Assembly (NCBI GenBank): GCA_950097015.1 | Contig: CATNEN010000002.1 | Span: 1,736,001 to 1,800,000, forward strand | DNA: 64,000 nucleotides | Direction: 5' to 3' | Origin: Macrostomum hystrix | Lineage: Eukaryota > Animalia > Platyhelminthes | Shown: positions 43,411 to 52,692 of the stretch, piece after piece | Layout: every line of letters starts with the position of its first letter | How positions within the stretch are numbered: position 1 is the stretch's first letter | Position numbers and translations under genes: made by a program | Notes under the pieces: model-generated | Seen by the model: only the letters and a program-made list of their open reading frames with translations | Databases searched by the model: none | Told to the model about the DNA's origin: nothing

Positions 43411-45239
43411 ACTGTTGTTTCTTAGAAGCCATTTGTACTCTATGCTTCAGATTTATCAAGGAGTTCTCAAACTATTTCACGTGAGAAAAAGACAATCCAA
43501 ATTAGTGTGCGCTTGGCATACTTAACCATTATCTTTCAGACGATCTGCATGTTTTAACATTTCGTATTTTTTGTCGAAAAAAACATTTTACTTTTCAACT
43601 ATGCTTTTGAATGTCCTTTTTCTACAGCCCTGTGATGTATTTCAATTTGTTCATCAAACTATTCCGATCCTCCTGAAGGTATACTTAGCAAGAGCTTAGC
43701 AATAGTACAATCGACGAGTACAGCTCCGTAGATACAATATGTAAATTCCAATCCGAATGGTGTATTCCGGTCTTTCTTCTATATGTCCCTGACAACAAAG
43801 ACATTTTTTCTTATTTAACATAATGCTGTAGCATTACTTGGGGAATGGAGATGCTGTGTGCCTCATTGTGAGCCAGTCAGTTCATTTTTAATTTTGAAGC
43901 CTCTAATGCATTGAAAATGCAAGAAGTTGTACGCTCAGCTTTCATTGTTGTAGTTTTTGTTTAAAATGTTCCTATTTGTGAACTTTTTTTCATTTTGTCC
44001 ACCCAGTTCTCGATGCTTTTTTGCTTTTGTTACCTCCTCATGTTTATTTGTTACGGCTATAGTTTTTCCTGACTTTCAAATAACGTTTTAAGATCGTTTA
44101 TAGGGTGAGTTTTTGGGCGGAGTTCTGGCAACGGAACAAAAAAGTCAATTTTGTTTTCTTAACTGGATTTTTTTCCCTCAAGGTCCTCTCGGAAGTTTTA
44201 TTTCCCGAGTTAAAAGCAGCATTTTCTGCTTTTTATTGTAATAATAAAGCAATTTATAAGCTGAATATGACAATAGAAACTTTAATTGCTGCTGATTTTA
44301 TAATATGATCTCTTTAAATATCGGTTTTATGCCCACAATTACAAGTACGTACTTTTTGTTATAACTTTTATCCCTTTTATCACTCTTATGCTAATATGCA
44401 AGCCAACCTCCGTTTACATGCTCCCAGAGAAGTCTGACTGTAGGCTGCAAGAAAGTTTTTTTATCCCAAAGTACAGTCTTCCTATTTACTAAGAAACAAA
44501 CTTAAAGTACTGCCTCATTAAAAACAGACTTCTCTGGAAGCTGCAGTTAAGTGCATCGCGGATAAACAAAAAATAAAATGCATCCTATCATTCGCCTCAA
44601 CTTGCCTACTTTTTGTTATAACTCGGATTTGAATTGTTTGATTTGAAACTTTTTTTAGTTTTTTCATCAGTATGTCTCGATTCTGAGGTCTGGGAGTGCT
44701 CTGTGCAAAATCCAAACACGCACATTTTCAGAATAACTCTCTTAAATTAGCACTGTTGCCCTTCGCAAAGCAAGGGCATTGTTATACACTTGTCATCTAA
44801 TTTTGTAAACTCTTTACTGTGATCAGGCTTGTGTGTATTTTAATTTTAGCCAACTCTTTCGTCACGACAGCTTACTCATTCTCAACCAGTTTTCTGACCA
44901 TTGCACTAATTTGCTAGCTGAACCATAAAAGTATGAGGTCATTTTTAAACCGCTTCTTTCAACAGCTCACCTTAAGCGTGTCCAGAGTGGAAATTTCTAG
45001 TTTATGTAAAAAAGGTACGCTAATTTGCTTGCTTTTTTGCTAGCTCTTGGCAGGGACAACTAAAACCCTCGTTTTGGTTGTCCCTGGCTCTTGGTTGATC
45101 GGAAATAAAAATGCACTTATAGTTATATTTAAGTTTTGAAGCACTCTTTCATTGTTGATTTTAGTTTTCACATTTAAGTTCATTATTGTGGATGCAATGC
45201 CACGCATTTGAAAAAAATCAATTTTGAATGGGTTTTCAC

Positions 45240-45890
45240 TTCAAGCCCTTCACTCCACACTCTTCACTCCACATCTGTCACCCCACACCCGTCACCCCAC
45301 ACCCGTCACCCCAAACCCGGCACTCCACACCCTTCGCCCTACACCCGTCACCTCACACCCCGTCACACCACACCGTCACTCCACAGCCGTCACCCCACAC
45401 CCTTCACCCCACACACGTCACTTCACCCCGCACCCCAAACCCGGCACTCCACACCCTTCGCGCTACACCCGTCACCCCACACCCCGTCACACCACACCCC
45501 GTCACACCACACCGTCACTCCGCAGCCGTCACCCCACACCCTTCACCCCACACCCTTCACCCCACACCCGTCAATTCACACCATTCACCTCACACCCGTC
45601 ACCCCACACCCCGTCACCCAACACTCTTCACCCCACACCCGTCACTCCACATCATTCACCTCACACCCCGTCACACCACACCGTCACTCCGCAGCCGTCA
45701 CCCCACACCCTTCACCCCACACCCTTCACCCCACACCCGTCAATTCACACCATTCACCTCACACCCGTCACCCCACACCCCGTCACCCAACACTCTTCAC
45801 CCCACACCCGTCACTCCACATCATTCACCTCACACCCGTCACCCCACACCCGTCACTCCGCACCCGTCAACCGTCACCACAGCTAAACCC
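45240..45890. repeat. Degenerate CA-rich minisatellite (core caccccacacccgt)
   Basis: Tandem core with longer internal duplications. Confidence 0.9.
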
Positions 45891-46540
45891 AACTACGAGT
45901 AATAAATCTACTAAACTTATGTTCAGGTAAATCAAAAAAAAATATGCATAGCTATATTTCCTTCCATACAGGCAGTTATAGTGCTGCTTACAGGAATACA
46001 AATACCATAGTGCATGCATTACATATCCTGTAAACTATAGCTGTAGTACAATCAGAAATGATTACATTTGCATAAGGGCTTACAGGGCTTGACTATCTAG
46101 TATACACTGACCAATGCTCCTCACAAACAATCATATGAATTTGGTAGAGGTTCAGCTTTCAGAGATAAGTTTATAAGTTCTGTTTGAAACTTTTAGACAA
46201 AGTTAAAAATTTAAGTTCTGAACATCTGTCTGAAGTGTGTTTAATTTGCAGAACACATCGAAAGGAACTGTTATTTAGTCATTTAACGACATTCTAAATT
46301 CCTAATTCTCACGGATATTCTTAATATTCGAAATCCGTGATAGCATCAATATCAATCCTGATTGTTTGGTTCGGTTGTCTACTGTCTGAGAAGCTGACAA
46401 ACAGCTACTAATATTTCTCCACTAATACTGGTAGTAGTGCAATGGTATTGAAATTGTTCTTTCGGTAACTCGATTTTAATGCACGACATTATTTATTTGG
46501 CGTTAATTGTTAAAATGAGTGATTTACTAAAGCTTTTTAT

Positions 46541-46815
46541 TTACACCTGCCCCGATTAGGCCACATGCATGCGGCACGGCTGCGCATCTAAAAGCTGCTT
46601 ATGGCTGTTCAGTCCATGGACTGGGCACCCTAATTTTCTTCAGCTGACACTCGTATCCATTTAACATCTGGATGAATTGAAGCAATGTAGATCGAGATAA
46701 GTGTTTTGCTAAAAGTCCATGGACTGAACAGCCGTACACAGCCGTACACAGCAATACCTGTGGCTGTGCTGTCGGTCGCACATCTGGCCCAATTGGGGGC
46801 AGGTGTAATCAATTA
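46541..46815. mobile_element. Inverted pair of family B SINE fragments
   Basis: 46541-46713 is a minus-strand 5'-truncated copy (CORE plus 3' end). 46714-46815 is a plus-strand 3' end starting at the palindrome AGTCCATGGACT. Confidence 0.75.
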
Positions 46816-47321
46816 TAATATTTTAAGACTCAAGTGGATCGCTCAACACGAAACCGCGTTCACCAAAAATTCATAAGATTTTAAAGGCCAGCAGGCCTAC
46901 ATTAAAATGTAACCCAACCCCTGATTCTTTTCCCACTGGTCGAATTCGCATGAATTTATCACGGTAATTCCATGGTAATTCCACGGTAATTCCCCGGTAA
47001 TTCCGCTGCTCGCCCACCGCGACAACGCTTAGCCTGTCAAATAACGCTGAGATGCGATCAACCATCTCTAAAAATATCACTACCCGTGTACAAACAGAAT
47101 GCGTTCTGCTTTTAAACCAAACAAAAAATATGAGTAACCACTGTTGTCCTGCTAAATTTCTTTGCACTCAGCTACAGATCCAGTTAAGACAAGAGTTTAG
47201 TTGAGAATTCAAATTAATTACCTTTTCTTCAGAAACAGAACCTACGGACTTGGCCCAATTTCTCGCAACACATTGGAACTAGCAAGACAATGAGAAAGTT
47301 GACTACTCAATAAAATACGTG

Positions 47322-50300
47322 ATGGAGTCCATCTCAGAATCACTGGTTTCTGCTGCTGAGCTTGGAAATTTCAGCTGCCTCACCGGTCTTCTGGATAGTG
47401 GAGTGCACCCAGACAGTCAGAACTCGGATCAGTTTTCAGCCCTGCACTTCGCTTGTCGGCATGGCAACCCAGTTGCAGCTCAACAGCTTATTGAAGCATC
47501 GGCAGACGTTGACCTTCCGGCGTGGGACGGCTCAACCCCATTGCACTCTGCGGTGCTTGGAGGCAGCGCGCCAGTAACCGAGCTGCTGCTGACGTCTCAG
47601 GCCTGCTTGGAGTCCCAGACGGTGGGTGGAGCGCGACCGATTCACTTCGCAGTGACTCTCGGATCTGAAAAGATCATCCAGCTGCTGTTGATGGCGATGG
47701 ATGCCGCTGGTGCTGACGTCGACTGTCAAAAGCCGTCGGCGTCTTCAAAAACTGCTGCCTCGCTGTCTCCGCTATTCCTGGCTGCCGTATTTGGACGCTC
47801 GCAAGCGGCAGCCCATCTGATCAGAGCTGGAGCTGATGTCGAATTTCGCACCTCTGTGGATGCTGCCGCATCCATCGCCGCGATGTTTCCACACGAGTCG
47901 CTGCATCTGAGCGCAGCCGAAGCTTTCGTTCTTAGTCGACCAGGTGTATCCGTGATGGCAGCGGCTGCAGTGAGGGGCCACGCTGACATTGTGAAGCAGC
48001 TGACGATGCACAGTGAGAGTCTTCGTCAGCTAGCAGATGCGGTATCTGATGTGCGACTTGTGCATTTGGAGGCGCTGCAATCTACCAAAACTACTGATTC
48101 TAACAGCAACTGTTCGACGAAAGCATTGGAAAAAGTACTGCCACACAGCATGGCAGAGTTTGGCAGCGACGTCCTTGAGACAGTTCAGAGGCTGATTGGC
48201 ACGCAGGAAGTGTCTTTTGACATTCAAGATGAGCGCGGTCGGACAGCGTTACACAAAGCAGCCAGGGAAAATCACAAAAGTGCAGTCGCGCTGCTGATCA
48301 AGGCTTGCTCCAATGTGGATGCTTTGGACGAAAATGGCTGGTCGCCACTTCACTCGGCAGCCATGCTAGGACACCACGAAGTTGCTGATCTACTGGCCAA
48401 GGCGGGAGCCTTCCTGGACTTTCAGGACATTCAGAAGCGAACTCCGCTGCACTTCGCGGCAGAAAACGGCCACACGGAAACCGCTGCCAAGCTGCTCAGC
48501 CGCGGCTGCGATCCAAATCGAAGGGACAGCAAAGGTCAAACCCCACTTCATGTAGCCATTTCCAACAAACACCAAGCGACAGTGAGATTGTTGATTGAGG
48601 CCGGTGCCGATTTGACTGCTTCAAACTTGGAAGGTCGATCGGCTCTGCATGTCGGCGCCATGTGTGACAGCCTCGAGTCCATGGAGATGCTGCTCAAAGT
48701 GGCAGCTGATTTGGATTCACAGGACGTCAAAGGCAACACGGCAATGCATTTGGCTGGATTGTCGCATCATAGCCACGCCTTTGAACTGCTGCGTGCCGCA
48801 GGTGCCGATGATTCAATACAAAATGCCAACAACATTTCACCCTCTGAATTAGTGGGCTTTTTCTCAGCATATTTCTCAACTCCACAGCATCAAGAGCCTC
48901 AGCAGCAGCCGCTGTTGCAATCCAAGCAGCAGGAGGCCGAGTTCAGCGTTAGTCTGTCGCAGGCGATGTTGAAAGCGGGCTTCAGATCCGAGAATGCGTC
49001 AGTGCAGAGCGGCGCCGCGTCAGTCATGGAAGAAATTCTCAGAAGCAGATTTGGAATTCAGGACGTCTTTGTTTTTGGCAGCTTCTCGGACGGATGGGGC
49101 AGTAGCTTGTCTGGAATTAATGGAAGCATCGATCCCGACTCGGACATCGACATCACTTTTATCCTGCCACGGCGGCCCCTGTGCCAAATCGGTCAGGCAA
49201 ATCTGTGCAGGCATGATGGCACACATCATGAAGTTGCTTACTATGATGGTCACCTGTTGCATGAAATCGACTGTAAGTTCCACTTGTCACATGGATACCT
49301 CTGATTCCCGTTCTCTAAAAAACTAATCCAATTCATTGCAGATAAAAATCCAAACTTAGAATACCAAGACCCTCTACGCTTGGTGCCATCAGTCGACGTA
49401 ATTAAAGCGCTACCCTGCTGCGGATATCCGAGCGTCGACCTCCTGCACCCAGGGTACAGAGCTCGCAACGGCTGCAGATCTAACATATACAATGACATCA
49501 TTCAAGCTCTGAGCTCTGAGATTCAATCGCCACGCTGTCACGCAGTTGCTGCGTCATTTCCGGGACATGCGGGCAGCTGCTTGCGGGTGAGCACAACTCA
49601 TCTAGAGAGAACTGTGTTGCGCAATCTCACAACAATTCAGGGCCAGTTCTTTATTCTAATGAAATTCCTCATCAAGAGAGTGATCAGCAATCGAGTGACG
49701 GGTCTGAAGACTTACATTGGCAAGAACTTGTTGTTTTTTATGCTGGACCAGACTCCTGCAGGTGACTGGAAGCCGGAGAACCTGATCTCACTGCTACGTG
49801 AGTCTCTGCAGCTCCTGGTAACAATGATGGCGAGTTCAGGCAGGGATGACGCTTGCATGAATCACTTCTTCCTCCGTGATGCCATTGTTTACTTGAAAAA
49901 AGACCACCATCCAAAGCCAGATATCATCACGGTGGTAGCGGAAGTTTCCAGTAACCTGGTGCAGTCATTTGAACAATTTAAAGTGGCACTGAATGGCGAC
50001 TAGTACTCATCGTCCAAGCTAATCCAGTTTCACCCGTTTATCATCATGAATGTCATTGCCTCAAAGCATGAGCAGTCAGTATACGGGGTGTCGAGATTGC
50101 CTGCTGCCTCAAATGGATCAATAGAGTATCACCAGATCTACGACCTCGTGCACTCTGCTATTAAAATGCTGCTTGCGGCACCAAGGACAGCCAGATTCGA
50201 GGACTTGATCCAGCAAGTGAACAGAATTCCGAATTGTGCAAGAACTGCCTGGCACTGCCTGAGAGTAATGTCGCACTTGACATTCGATAAGCCTTTTTCT

Positions 50301-51134
50301 GACACAACTGAGCTGCTTACCAGCGCTGTTAGCTATGGGATACCCTGTCCAGACTCTCAACTGTCAATTGAAGAAGCCAAGAAGCTCGTCTGGAGCCACA
50401 TTTGGAGTGAAGACTCAGCATGGAGATTTGCGTTTGAGAACGATTCTCGACTGAATTTTGAGCATCTGTTCTCGCACTCTCAGTTCGCTCGGTTTTCTCA
50501 GTCCTGGTTCAGCGCTTGTCAGAATAACTCGTGCCTAAACTTTGACGGCCTGAGAAGGGCGTTGCAGAGTAGGCTTGCTGGCAGTCCGGTCGATTTGTCC
50601 CACAGCTTTAGCGACTTTCTGACGCAAATACCCACTGTGACACCAGCGCTTATGTCGGGGAATATTGCCAGAATGGTGTCCAGTTCAGACTGGGAAACGC
50701 TTCGAAGTCAGAGCAGACAGAATCCGAACGTGATGTCCGCATTTGTCCAGTCCGCTTTCCAACATGTTGTTCAAAAATGGGTGAGTATTCTGCTATCTTT
50801 AAATGCGATATTAATTTGCGTGACAGCTAATTTCCTTCAACTCTGATTCATTTGATTTATTGCTTCATCCAGAAAAGAATTGCTCAAACTGAGTACGGAG
50901 AAATGCTCGGCTCGACTGACTCCGGCCTCGTCAAATACACAGAGTCAGGCGAGTTTGAGGCCGAACTTCGACAACAGGCGGTTGGATAAACTTTTCACGT
51001 GAATTAATGATTTAAATTGCATTATCGCGAGTTTAAATTAGCAAATTTAATTATTTCAGACCCGGGCAATGGAAGTACTTTCTAACGACCGGGTTGGTAA
51101 CAGTTTCAGCCAGCTGGCAGTTTCGTCAGATTAA
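47322..51134 (+). CDS. Ankyrin-repeat Mab-21/cGAS-like (cGLR) nucleotidyltransferase with in-frame TAG at 50001-50003
   Basis: Exons 47322-49272, 49342-50780, 50873-50980 and 51060-51134, with GT-AG junctions in phase. About 12 ankyrin repeats in two blocks. NTase motif FGS...SDID, third acidic residue in SVDVIKAL, and Mab-21 C-terminal LERTVL...LMKFL...LKTYIGKNLLF...W...HFF. Confidence 0.85.
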
Positions 51135-51196
51135 TTTTTTGTTTGCAACAGTTGAATAACGCTTCAGATATTGTCCTGGATTTAATTTTAGCGGCT

Positions 51197-52692
51197 ATCA
51201 GAAAGGACGAACGCTCTTATGTCAGTAGCGGCAACGGCACTGGGGTCAAATGACTTAGCTATCAGTGGCGATTCGGAGTACATTCAACGAATTACTTCTC
51301 AGGTAATAGTGAGCAGTGTTCTCTGATGATTTCGCTCCTAATTTGCTCTTTTTCCATTTTACTGCTAGCTGGTAAAAATTATTTTCAGTTAGCGCAAGCA
51401 TCTACAATTGCAAGTCAACCCCAGGCGAGTATACCCATCGATTGATAGGGCCAATCGGGTTTTTACGGTAGCCGCGAAAAAATCTACGGTTTACAAACTA
51501 TTTTCGGGAAATTTTTAATCTTTATTGTCTTTGCTGAGTGTTTTGCTTATTTTAGGTATTTATTTTTGGTTGATTGTGCTATTCCTTTAAGTCATTTTTT
51601 GTTTTACCATTCGTTAATATTTTAATCGGTGTTTATGAAGCGAACTAAGTCGCGAAAAAGAAAAGTAGCTAATTTTTCAGTACAATCTTAAGCATGCTAA
51701 GAATAAATTTATTTTGACAACAACTGCTATTGGCGTGACTCTATGGGAACTCGCTCATTCAATCACATGCTACTCATATAGTGGAATCTTTTAAGACGTA
51801 AACGTCGTCTGTGCGTGATTCAATTTTGTAGCTTCGACTTGAATGGAAGTAATGACAACAGAGCAACACAGGCGGCACTGAACCATAGCAGTAATACGCT
51901 TTTTAGTAGTTCTTGGCCAAAAATTTGATTTACGATTTACCTGTTTTGGTATCATAATGTAGCAAGGACTATACTAAAAATAGACATAGCTATATTATGA
52001 ATAAAATAGAGGTCCTTGTATTGTGGCCGGTGACTCAAAAGACTTGGAAGCGCTCTATAGGTCCCAGCTGAGCTACGTACTGAGCATGATGCCATCCAGA
52101 TACGAGACTCTAGGCCAGGGTACGTGCGACGGACGAGCGGTGCGGCGACTGTGTGCCTTGGAATCTGTAACGACGAGGGCGCCGCCGAAGATGCTGTGCT
52201 CGAAACGCCGAGTCTAGCTAGACCTGTTCCGGAACGCTGAAGCCGATCGGTGATTGGTTGGGAGGGAAGTGGGGTGGGTACTGGGAACGGAAATTATTTA
52301 TTACTTGGAGTGAGGGTGGTTGTGCGATTTACGAGCATTAGATTCTCGTACATAGCAAATGATATGTGATCGAGAAAACAAAGTATTGGGAGGGAGATGA
52401 GTGGGTGTGCGATCTAAAAAGAAAAAAAGTACGACTATGTGCATGCGCCATTAAAAAGTTGTGTGGGAGCGCTTGAGAGGTGGGGAAGTCATAAATCTTA
52501 AAAAAGGAGGGAGGTGGGCGCATTCTGACAGCAAGGAGAAGAAAAAATTGAGGATTTACGTTTGGAAAAGATGATCACGCAGGGTGAGTAATCTGGGAAG
52601 GGAATAGAAGGGACGTTGGAAGGGCATCAGAAAGGACGAACGCTCTTATGTCAGTAGCGGCAACGGCACTGGGGTCAAATGACTTAGCTATC
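51197..52692. repeat. Perfect 67-bp direct repeats at 51197-51263 and 52626-52692
   Basis: atcagaaaggacgaacgctcttatgtcagtagcggcaacggcactggggtcaaatgacttagctatc is identical at both sites. Confidence 0.95.
52020..52220 (+). mobile_element. Decayed LINE 3' fragment related to 32200-32650
   Basis: DLEALYRSQLSYVLSM matches ALDALYRSLLRYALGV at both DNA and protein level. Confidence 0.55.

Follow-up and report, generated by a model that had tools for sequence, protein, structure and literature searches.

Introduction

A segment of the Macrostomum hystrix genome (GenBank assembly GCA_950097015.1, contig CATNEN010000002.1, positions 1,736,001–1,800,000 of the forward strand) carries, between positions 47,322 and 50,003 of the 64,000 nucleotides analysed (hereafter the window, numbered from its first letter), coding sequence in which ankyrin repeats stand next to a cGAS-like receptor (cGLR) enzyme domain. 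The locus raises the questions of whether these parts form a single gene, whether the enzyme retains its active site, and whether the gene really ends at the in-frame TAG at 50001–50003. We find that it is a genuine, expressed ankyrin-fused cGLR (ANK-cGLR) with conserved catalytic motifs that belongs to an already catalogued Macrostomum family. Taken as a whole, the evidence points with good probability to one transcribed and spliced member of this family that was recently truncated by the TAG, ahead of a C-terminal domain (CTD) found in its relatives.

Fusions of cGLRs to ankyrin or tetratricopeptide repeats (TPR) are recognised architecture classes (Li et al., 2023, bioRxiv 10.1101/2023.02.22.529553, PMC9980059; Fig. 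1C, S2A), and the ANK-fused class, for example in Stylophora pistillata, combines a cGLR core with an ankyrin module as the window does. In the same study, Table S2 lists Macrostomum lignano proteins as cGLRs with Ank_2, and Table S3 includes five M. lignano proteins of this exact family cloned for a biochemical screen, one of them (PAA57558.1) in the 90% cluster of P0002, the closest relative of the window's C-lobe. The suggestion in a first-pass annotation of the window that such a fusion is easily overlooked thus does not hold, since ANK-cGLRs are already a named class with tabulated M. lignano members.

Results

Ankyrin array and enzyme share one transcribed frame

Three plus-strand open reading frames (ORFs) with a single shared frame (47319–49304, 49380–50003 and 50046–50846) make up the locus, the three pieces into which, as the first-pass annotation remarked, an ORF track divides it. 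Removal of the 69-bp, frame-preserving GT..AG intron at 49273–49341, by which that annotation had joined the ankyrin part to the nucleotidyltransferase (NTase), yields an 870-residue protein running from the ATG at 47322 to the TAG. Contigs from three sequencing runs of one organism and from one run labelled as another organism were placed on positions 46800–52500 (5,701 letters); about 80% of the sampled words of the stretch are contained in four runs of one organism, from one study. The contigs of the three RNA-like runs (X2, X3 and X4) all skip exactly 49273–49341 and, being spliced, represent RNA; they differ from the window at no letter, the TAG included. Moreover, one X4 contig (record 16) reaches from ankyrin position 47981 to position 49744 of the enzyme C-lobe, so that array and enzyme constitute one transcribed frame. 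Separate genes for the two parts, whose transcripts the first-pass annotation had named as the finding that would undo the fusion, are thereby ruled out. The transcript also runs on past 50003: a 2,434-nt contig is unspliced over 49342–50779 and then crosses four more GT..AG introns to reach 51590. No second paralogue was found within the window by tblastn.

Two further contig matches were observed. In X2 and X3, contigs match just 49070–49109 (40 nt, coding for the GS motif) at 90–95% and are unlike the window on both sides; they probably come from an expressed paralogue sharing this conserved coding stretch of the GS loop. In run X1, labelled with another organism and study, a 260-nt contig is identical to 48322–48581 in the second ankyrin block; carry-over could account for this, or the run may be from the same species, labelled differently.

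The TAG precedes a C-terminal domain conserved in relatives

The first-pass annotation closed the gene at 50003, whereas both the transcript and a homologous frame go on, over five exons. The post-TAG peptide comprises 14 codons, then the third ORF, then four exons (347 codons when counted from the ATG at 50046), with exon lengths that are all multiples of three and no frameshift. It is homologous to the stretch that follows directly after the enzyme in 39 relatives (E-values down to 4e-27), and the alignments begin at residue 2 after the stop. When the junction is aligned with an X at the stop, the window is collinear with 20 relatives and the TAG falls in a variable linker. At the M. lignano locus of PAA90451.1 (L001, in NIVC01000110.1), no stop occurs in frame over at least 437 codons spanning the equivalent point. 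Inspection of L001:4642–7000 further showed an open frame from the strand of the third catalytic Asp through the CTD, and an intron of about 660 nt at the position of the window's 69-bp intron.

The CTD, about 300 residues long, follows the enzyme in relatives. In an alignment of 31 CTDs its most conserved element is F-H-P-F, with the P and last F invariant and over 90% conservation of the first F and H; positions 50028–50039 of the window, between the TAG and the first ATG at 50046, encode this element, and none of the eight CTD residues that are invariant or nearly so has been lost. In the subfamily, enzyme and CTD (F-x-F-H-P-F) are read in one frame; in the window, DNA and RNA alike have the TAG in between. 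Measured against its relatives, then, the TAG reads as a premature stop and not as the natural end of the gene, and the default product would be an 870-residue ANK-cGLR that lacks the CTD. The undamaged state of the downstream frame, of its four introns and of the conserved residues suggests that the TAG arose recently, as a truncating or pseudogenising change that may be an allele still segregating. A change of this kind in an otherwise ordinary family member is the most likely explanation, and we consider it likely that the window holds a truncated or decaying allele instead of a full-length functional gene.

As regards the identity of the CTD, a model built from 50004–50780 and 30 relatives was mostly helical, with a predicted local distance difference test score (pLDDT) of 74 and a predicted template modelling score (pTM) of 0.72. 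Neither Pfam nor a profile search of the PDB gave a match to the CTD, its ESM features reached at most 0.80, and the model found no convincing PDB match with Foldseek (E > 1) and a TM score of at most 0.34 in a shape search of the Atlas. An exhaustive VIA search peaked at Z 6.5 for TPR-like helical rows, which is background level, and hhalign against the TPR tails of other spiralian cGLRs returned Prob 0.2%. With every fold and profile search at background or empty, a TPR or other known identity was rejected; as far as alignments and predicted structure go, the Macrostomum family carries a conserved CTD that is without a match to a known fold.

Could the C-terminal domain still be produced?

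The intact CTD frame, with its four introns and all its invariant or nearly invariant residues including FHPF, would also suit a gene that still makes the full-length ANK-cGLR-CTD protein, through read-through of the TAG or a minor 45-nt splice, perhaps as short and long isoforms. Positions 49983–50027 are indeed 45 nt in frame, bounded by GT..AG and containing the TAG; their removal would join ...EQFK to FHPF..., the donor GTGGCA is similar to GTTGGA and GTTGGT, weak donors that were verified, and word depth looks flat across the stop-containing contigs, a contig depth that cannot measure transcript level. However, the contigs of all three runs are unspliced here and retain the TAG, and the 49983–50027 joint occurs in none of them. 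A 45-nt intron would be well under the five verified ones (69–99 nt) and its removal would leave a linker about nine residues shorter than that of the relatives, while the context after the stop (TAG TAC TCA) is not known as a read-through context. Since an intact downstream frame is equally typical of a young pseudogene, we hold continued production of the full-length protein to be unlikely.

Alternatively, the gene may have undergone fission into an 870-residue ANK-cGLR and a separate 347-residue CTD protein starting at ATG 50046, on a bicistronic or its own, for example trans-spliced, transcript. This ATG, 14 codons past the TAG, opens a 347-codon frame maintained over four introns, an AG is present at 50026–50027, and Macrostomum uses spliced-leader trans-splicing and operons. 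Yet a protein beginning there would lose FHPF, the most conserved CTD motif, which lies upstream, and no relative begins at the CTD. In no run is there a contig break, loose end or cluster of starts near 50027–50046, and on that ground we rejected the idea that the downstream ORF has its own start or trans-splice site. That TAG and ATG share a frame with no stop between them is expected about once in six by chance, and the open frame between them is better accounted for by homology, which sets in at residue 2 past the TAG. Fission is therefore very improbable, and recent truncation of a single family gene remains the reading we prefer.

The enzyme domain has a predicted cGAS/Mab-21 fold

Taken singly, the two halves of the window's enzyme domain are faint matches to known families: the N-lobe alone scores 19.2 bits against Pfam NTP_transf_2 (E 0.0016; cut-off 21), single-sequence phmmer against the PDB was blank for both halves, and a word-indexed homology search with the N-lobe (residues 520–650 of the first ORF) found none, which reflects the sensitivity limit of that search, as an exhaustive one found 120 relatives. 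In the ESM Atlas the C-lobe falls with Mab-21 clusters (0.95; 210 of 256 features). The exhaustive HMMER search with the C-lobe returned the 120 proteins just mentioned, 36 of them below 1e-30, and the relatives exceed the Mab-21_C cut-off of Pfam. All ten entries inspected among P0001–P0018, as well as six sampled up to P0065, are from M. lignano, where UniProt names the relatives 'ANK_REP_REGION / Mab-21-like HhH/H2TH-like domain-containing protein'; the next homologue looked up, P0070, is an annelid protein. By local blastp, 68 cluster representatives have the N-lobe piece, encoded ahead of the intron, immediately before their C-lobe match; 48 of them have ankyrin repeats, 35 the CTD and 26 both.

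At profile level the relationship is clear. A family profile of 41 domains matched Sp-cGLR1 (8gjy, E 2.6e-8), cGAS (about 6e-6) and MAB21L1 (0.004) in the PDB, with nothing significant besides cGAS, cGLR and MAB21 chains, and hhalign of the family against canonical proteins with Mab-21 and Mab-21_C gave Prob 100 and E 8e-49 over 316 columns. OAS, poly(A)-polymerase and other NTase families were set aside, having yielded only sub-threshold Pfam matches (NTP_transf_2, Polbeta, MTPAP-like), with all profile and fold matches to cGAS, cGLRs or MAB21. The AlphaFold2 model for residues 527–895 of P0005, the closest relative with ankyrin repeats (pLDDT 89.3, pTM 0.90), has the bilobed cGAS/Mab-21 fold, a Pol-beta-like N-lobe with a helical C-lobe. 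Its top Foldseek matches were cGAS, Cv-cGLR1, Sp-cGLR1 and MAB21L1, and by VIA it superposed on cGAS with Z 18.5 and a root-mean-square deviation (rmsd) of 3.7 Å over 267 residues, and on MB21D2 and Cv-cGLR1 with Z 18.3. Homology to Mab-21 is thus established by profile comparison, even though the window on its own stays under the Pfam threshold, and the Mab-21 NTase fold named in the first-pass annotation is borne out by the family profile, by hhalign and by the relative's model superposed on cGAS. That the window protein is an ANK-fused cGLR is, in our judgement, highly probable.

Some relatives (P0001, P0016, P0070 and P0082) have a tandem pair of enzyme domains, each with its own CTD in P0001, and in this respect are like the fusions of several cGLRs that Li et al. 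(2023) mention.

Catalytic motifs are conserved in a divergent family

The strings VFGSF, SDID and PSVDVIKALPCCGYP, quoted in the first-pass annotation as motifs of an apparently intact active site, are all present in the spliced translation. They provide the h-G-[GS] motif expected after the first strand (G586-S587), the metal-binding [DE]-h-[DE] pair of the second strand (D608 and D610) and the third acidic residue, on a later strand (D669), of an NTase. In a 48-sequence alignment whose mean column identity is only 36%, G586 is conserved in 48/48, S587 in 47/48, D608 and D610 in 46/48 each, and D669 in 41/48; hhalign paired GS with GS, SDID with SD.D and the third Asp with an Asp of the canonical proteins, and in the relative's model the catalytic Asp residues lie on strands 88–94 and 161–170. 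Motifs, conservation and predicted fold together support the claim of an intact site, and intact members of the family are, on this pattern, rather more probably active enzymes than inactive ones.

Such a domain might instead be a non-enzymatic scaffold, as proposed for MAB21L1/2, with the fusion acting by protein binding only. MAB21L1 is among the structural and profile matches, a GS-to-DxD loop of 21 residues is atypical, and the text of Li et al. (2023), in the parts cited here, names no Macrostomum enzyme as active. On the other hand, GS, the DxD Asps and the third Asp persist in 41–48 of 48 paralogues otherwise about 36% identical, as would be expected if the active site works; they line up with the catalytic motifs of canonical cGLRs; and Li et al. 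placed these proteins among the predicted active cGLRs and cloned five. A pure scaffold seems improbable to us, and we continue to read the domain as a predicted enzyme.

The loop between GS and DxD, put at about 20 residues and considered long in the first-pass annotation, extends over 21 residues from S587 to D608, about eight more than in canonical lophotrochozoan cGLRs by profile alignment. In the window it reads GSFSDGWGSSLSGINGSIDPDSDID and conforms to the subfamily pattern GS..[DE]GWG...[ND]G, with an invariant Trp (W592, 48/48) and a nearly invariant Gly (G601, 47/48). A His/Cys pattern of the family, H..C..C...GH (H 42/48, C 40/48, C 39/48, G and H of the GH 44/48 and 40/48), lies between the strands of DxD and of the third Asp and looks like a metal site, possibly for zinc. 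The corresponding residues in the window are C621, A626, C629 and H644, so that it departs from the pattern at two positions: the first His is replaced by Cys, as in its closest relatives, and the first Cys by Ala. Model confidence is lowest at this cluster (pLDDT 58–71).

The calculated isoelectric point (pI) is 6.67 for residues 541–870 and, over the entire protein, 5.77; members of the family have a median of 7.3, and 14 of 41 lie above 8. Li et al. (2023) give a pI above 8.5 for the cGLRs that sense double-stranded DNA or RNA, and the window, calculated by a method that differs from theirs, falls short of it. A near-neutral or acidic pI is weakly consistent with the suggestion, made in the first-pass annotation, of a protein-sensing cGLR whose ligand would be other than nucleic acid.

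Ankyrin array and layout of the locus

Translation of 47322–49272 matches Pfam Ank_2 with E 1.1e-65 and Ank with E 4.9e-59, the latter with eight significant single repeats, and thus contains tandem 33-residue ankyrin repeats. A loose motif scan placed eight canonical repeats at residues 37, 70, 103, 306, 339, 372, 405 and 438, and reading the translation by eye adds about five degenerate ones, for a total of about 13 in two blocks (residues 7–232 and 285–503), close to the 12 or so in two blocks that the first-pass annotation had counted. The features of the locus are collected in Table 1.

Table 1. Positions in the window of the features of the ANK-cGLR locus and of its continuation beyond the TAG.
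Feature	Position	Strand	Evidence
5' untranslated region (UTR)	47093–47321	+	RNA contig starts at 47093–47168
Coding exon 1: start ATG, ankyrin array, linker, NTase N-terminal half; ends in phase 1	47322–49272	+	ORF; contigs with no differing letters
Ankyrin block 1, residues 7–232, about 6 repeats, the last ones degenerate	47340–48017	+	Pfam; motif scan; translation
Ankyrin block 2, residues 285–503, about 7 repeats	48174–48830	+	Pfam (best stretches residues 278–370 and 374–403); motif scan
NTase N-lobe part, residues ~541–651: spine helix, G586-S587 (49077–49082), GWG loop, D608-x-D610 (49143–49151)	48942–49272	+	blastp to 70 relatives; conservation; hhalign
His/Cys cluster between DxD strand and third-Asp strand, residues 621–644	49182–49253	+	Family alignment
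Intron 1, 69 bp, GT..AG	49273–49341	+	Spliced contigs X2, X3, X4; equivalent intron in M. lignano L001
Remaining NTase: D669 (49395–49397), CC.YP motif, Mab-21 C-lobe	49342–50000	+	Homologues; profiles
In-frame TAG closing the 870-residue product, in variable linker	50001–50003	+	DNA; RNA contigs; relatives
Post-TAG continuation in same exon and frame; CTD including F-H-P-F (50028–50039)	50004–50780	+	Contig 49342–50779; relatives
Intron 2, 92 bp, GT..AG	50781–50872	+	RNA contigs
CTD exon, 36 codons	50873–50980	+	RNA contigs
Intron 3, 79 bp	50981–51059	+	RNA contigs
CTD exon, 11 codons	51060–51092	+	RNA contigs
Intron 4, 99 bp	51093–51191	+	RNA contigs
CTD exon, 37 codons	51192–51302	+	RNA contigs
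Intron 5, 86 bp	51303–51388	+	RNA contigs
Last exon: 18 codons, stop at 51443–51445, then 3' UTR to contig limit	51389–51590	+	RNA contigs

In the 5' UTR, just ahead of the main ATG, a seven-codon upstream ORF (ATG...TAA, 47290–47313) lies out of frame. A 67-nt stretch of the second-to-last coding exon (51197–51263) recurs exactly at 52626–52692, 1,429 bp downstream and outside the reach of the transcript contigs. Upstream of the gene, 45208–45930 is a C-rich low-complexity repeat with long ORFs in all three plus frames encoding HTPHPSPHT-like peptides, and GC skew is strongly negative over 44001–46000 (−0.41).

Discussion

The closest counterparts of the window protein are the M. lignano ANK-cGLRs PAA90451.1 (P0005 cluster), PAA57558.1 (P0002) and PAA45980.1 (P0025), which have the same domain order and share with it the GWG loop, SDID, the third Asp, CC.YP and a CTD with FHPF; in an M. 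lignano homologue the intron of the enzyme domain also lies at the same place. Identity is 51% in the N-lobe and 58–60% in the C-lobe, the best reaching only 60%. The window differs from these relatives in the TAG between enzyme and CTD, where they read on. Outside Macrostomum, the nearest relatives of the enzyme are the TPR-tailed spiralian cGLRs (among them P0070, P0074 and P0088, with Mab-21, Mab-21_C and TPR; hhalign E 8e-49), which likewise have a long C-terminal extension. Theirs, however, is not detectably related to the Macrostomum CTD, and in these proteins an N-terminal ankyrin array is absent and the GS-to-DxD loop is shorter.

Mouse cGAS (4k9b), Cv-cGLR1 (8gjw), Sp-cGLR1 (8gjy) and human MB21D2 (7lt1) share the bilobed fold of the relative's model (Z about 18, rmsd 3.7–3.9 Å over 267–299 residues). 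The C-lobe of cGAS and the characterised cGLRs is homologous at profile level and their catalytic motifs follow the same order as in the Macrostomum family, but identity is only 10–15% and the Macrostomum proteins have about eight extra residues after GS. The Macrostomum His/Cys cluster precedes the third-Asp strand, whereas the zinc thumb of cGAS is located after it, and Macrostomum adds ankyrin and CTD modules to what is found in cGAS. The enzyme domain of the window is also not a positively charged one (pI 6.7), in contrast to the values above 8.5 of nucleic-acid sensors. In the parts of Li et al. (2023) on which we draw, no ligand, product or role is given for any ANK-cGLR, and we found neither the CTD of the Macrostomum family nor its longer GS-to-DxD loop or its His/Cys cluster described.

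Several points weigh against the interpretation of the locus as a recently truncated, catalytically competent family member. The window's own C-lobe scores 22.8 bits against Mab-21_C (E 1e-4), under the Pfam cut-off of 24.1, PF03281 of Pfam gives no match to its N-lobe, and the fold evidence comes from the model of a relative 51–58% identical to it instead of from its own domain. Placement of D608, D610 and D669 relies on motifs, alignment and predicted strands, and catalysis is predicted from motifs, the five cloned M. lignano constructs going unnamed in the text of Li et al. (2023) to the extent cited. All RNA runs belong to one single study, and contigs hide transcript ends as well as rare isoforms, such as low-level read-through or an alternatively spliced full-length product. 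The reading as a recent pseudogene is drawn from the intactness of the downstream region.

How intact members might work can be outlined provisionally. The family, greatly expanded in free-living flatworms of the Macrostomum type, has an N-terminal ankyrin array, then an NTase of the cGAS/Mab-21 fold (the cGLR), then the family-specific CTD of about 300 residues. The ankyrin array, perhaps with the CTD, may bind a partner or ligand, probably not a nucleic acid because the charge of the proteins is near-neutral to acidic. Binding could reposition the unusually long, conserved GS-to-DxD loop, whereupon a two-metal active site of D608, D610 and D669 would join nucleoside triphosphates into a nucleotide second messenger, to be read by a downstream receptor. 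One may go further and combine the 8-residue activation-loop insertion, a possibly zinc-binding His/Cys cluster and a new-fold CTD into a distinct cGLR subclass that senses non-nucleic-acid ligands through its ankyrin array and signals to TIR-STING receptors, with the TAG regulating, through its being read through or through a 45-nt micro-intron, whether the CTD-less or the full-length isoform is made. That all of this holds jointly we regard as quite improbable.

Loss of cGAS-STING has been described for Schistosoma (Wu et al., 2014, PMC4117786) as well as for Schmidtea, a planarian (Development 2026, PMC13563047), and Li et al. (2023) find most platyhelminths to be without cGLRs apart from Mab21-like proteins. 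Among flatworms, usually cited as having lost cGAS-STING, the early-branching Macrostomum is an exception, with dozens of cGLR paralogues, most of them fused to ankyrin arrays. The present locus adds an expressed member from a second Macrostomum genome, in which RNA confirms the ankyrin–enzyme fusion as a single gene. Beyond the gene catalogue, it shows the family to have a conserved CTD and suggests that single copies undergo truncation, in keeping with a family of fast turnover and immune-like character. The question of what cGLRs coupled to ankyrin arrays detect concerns the family as a whole, of which the probably damaged copy in the window would not be the best representative.

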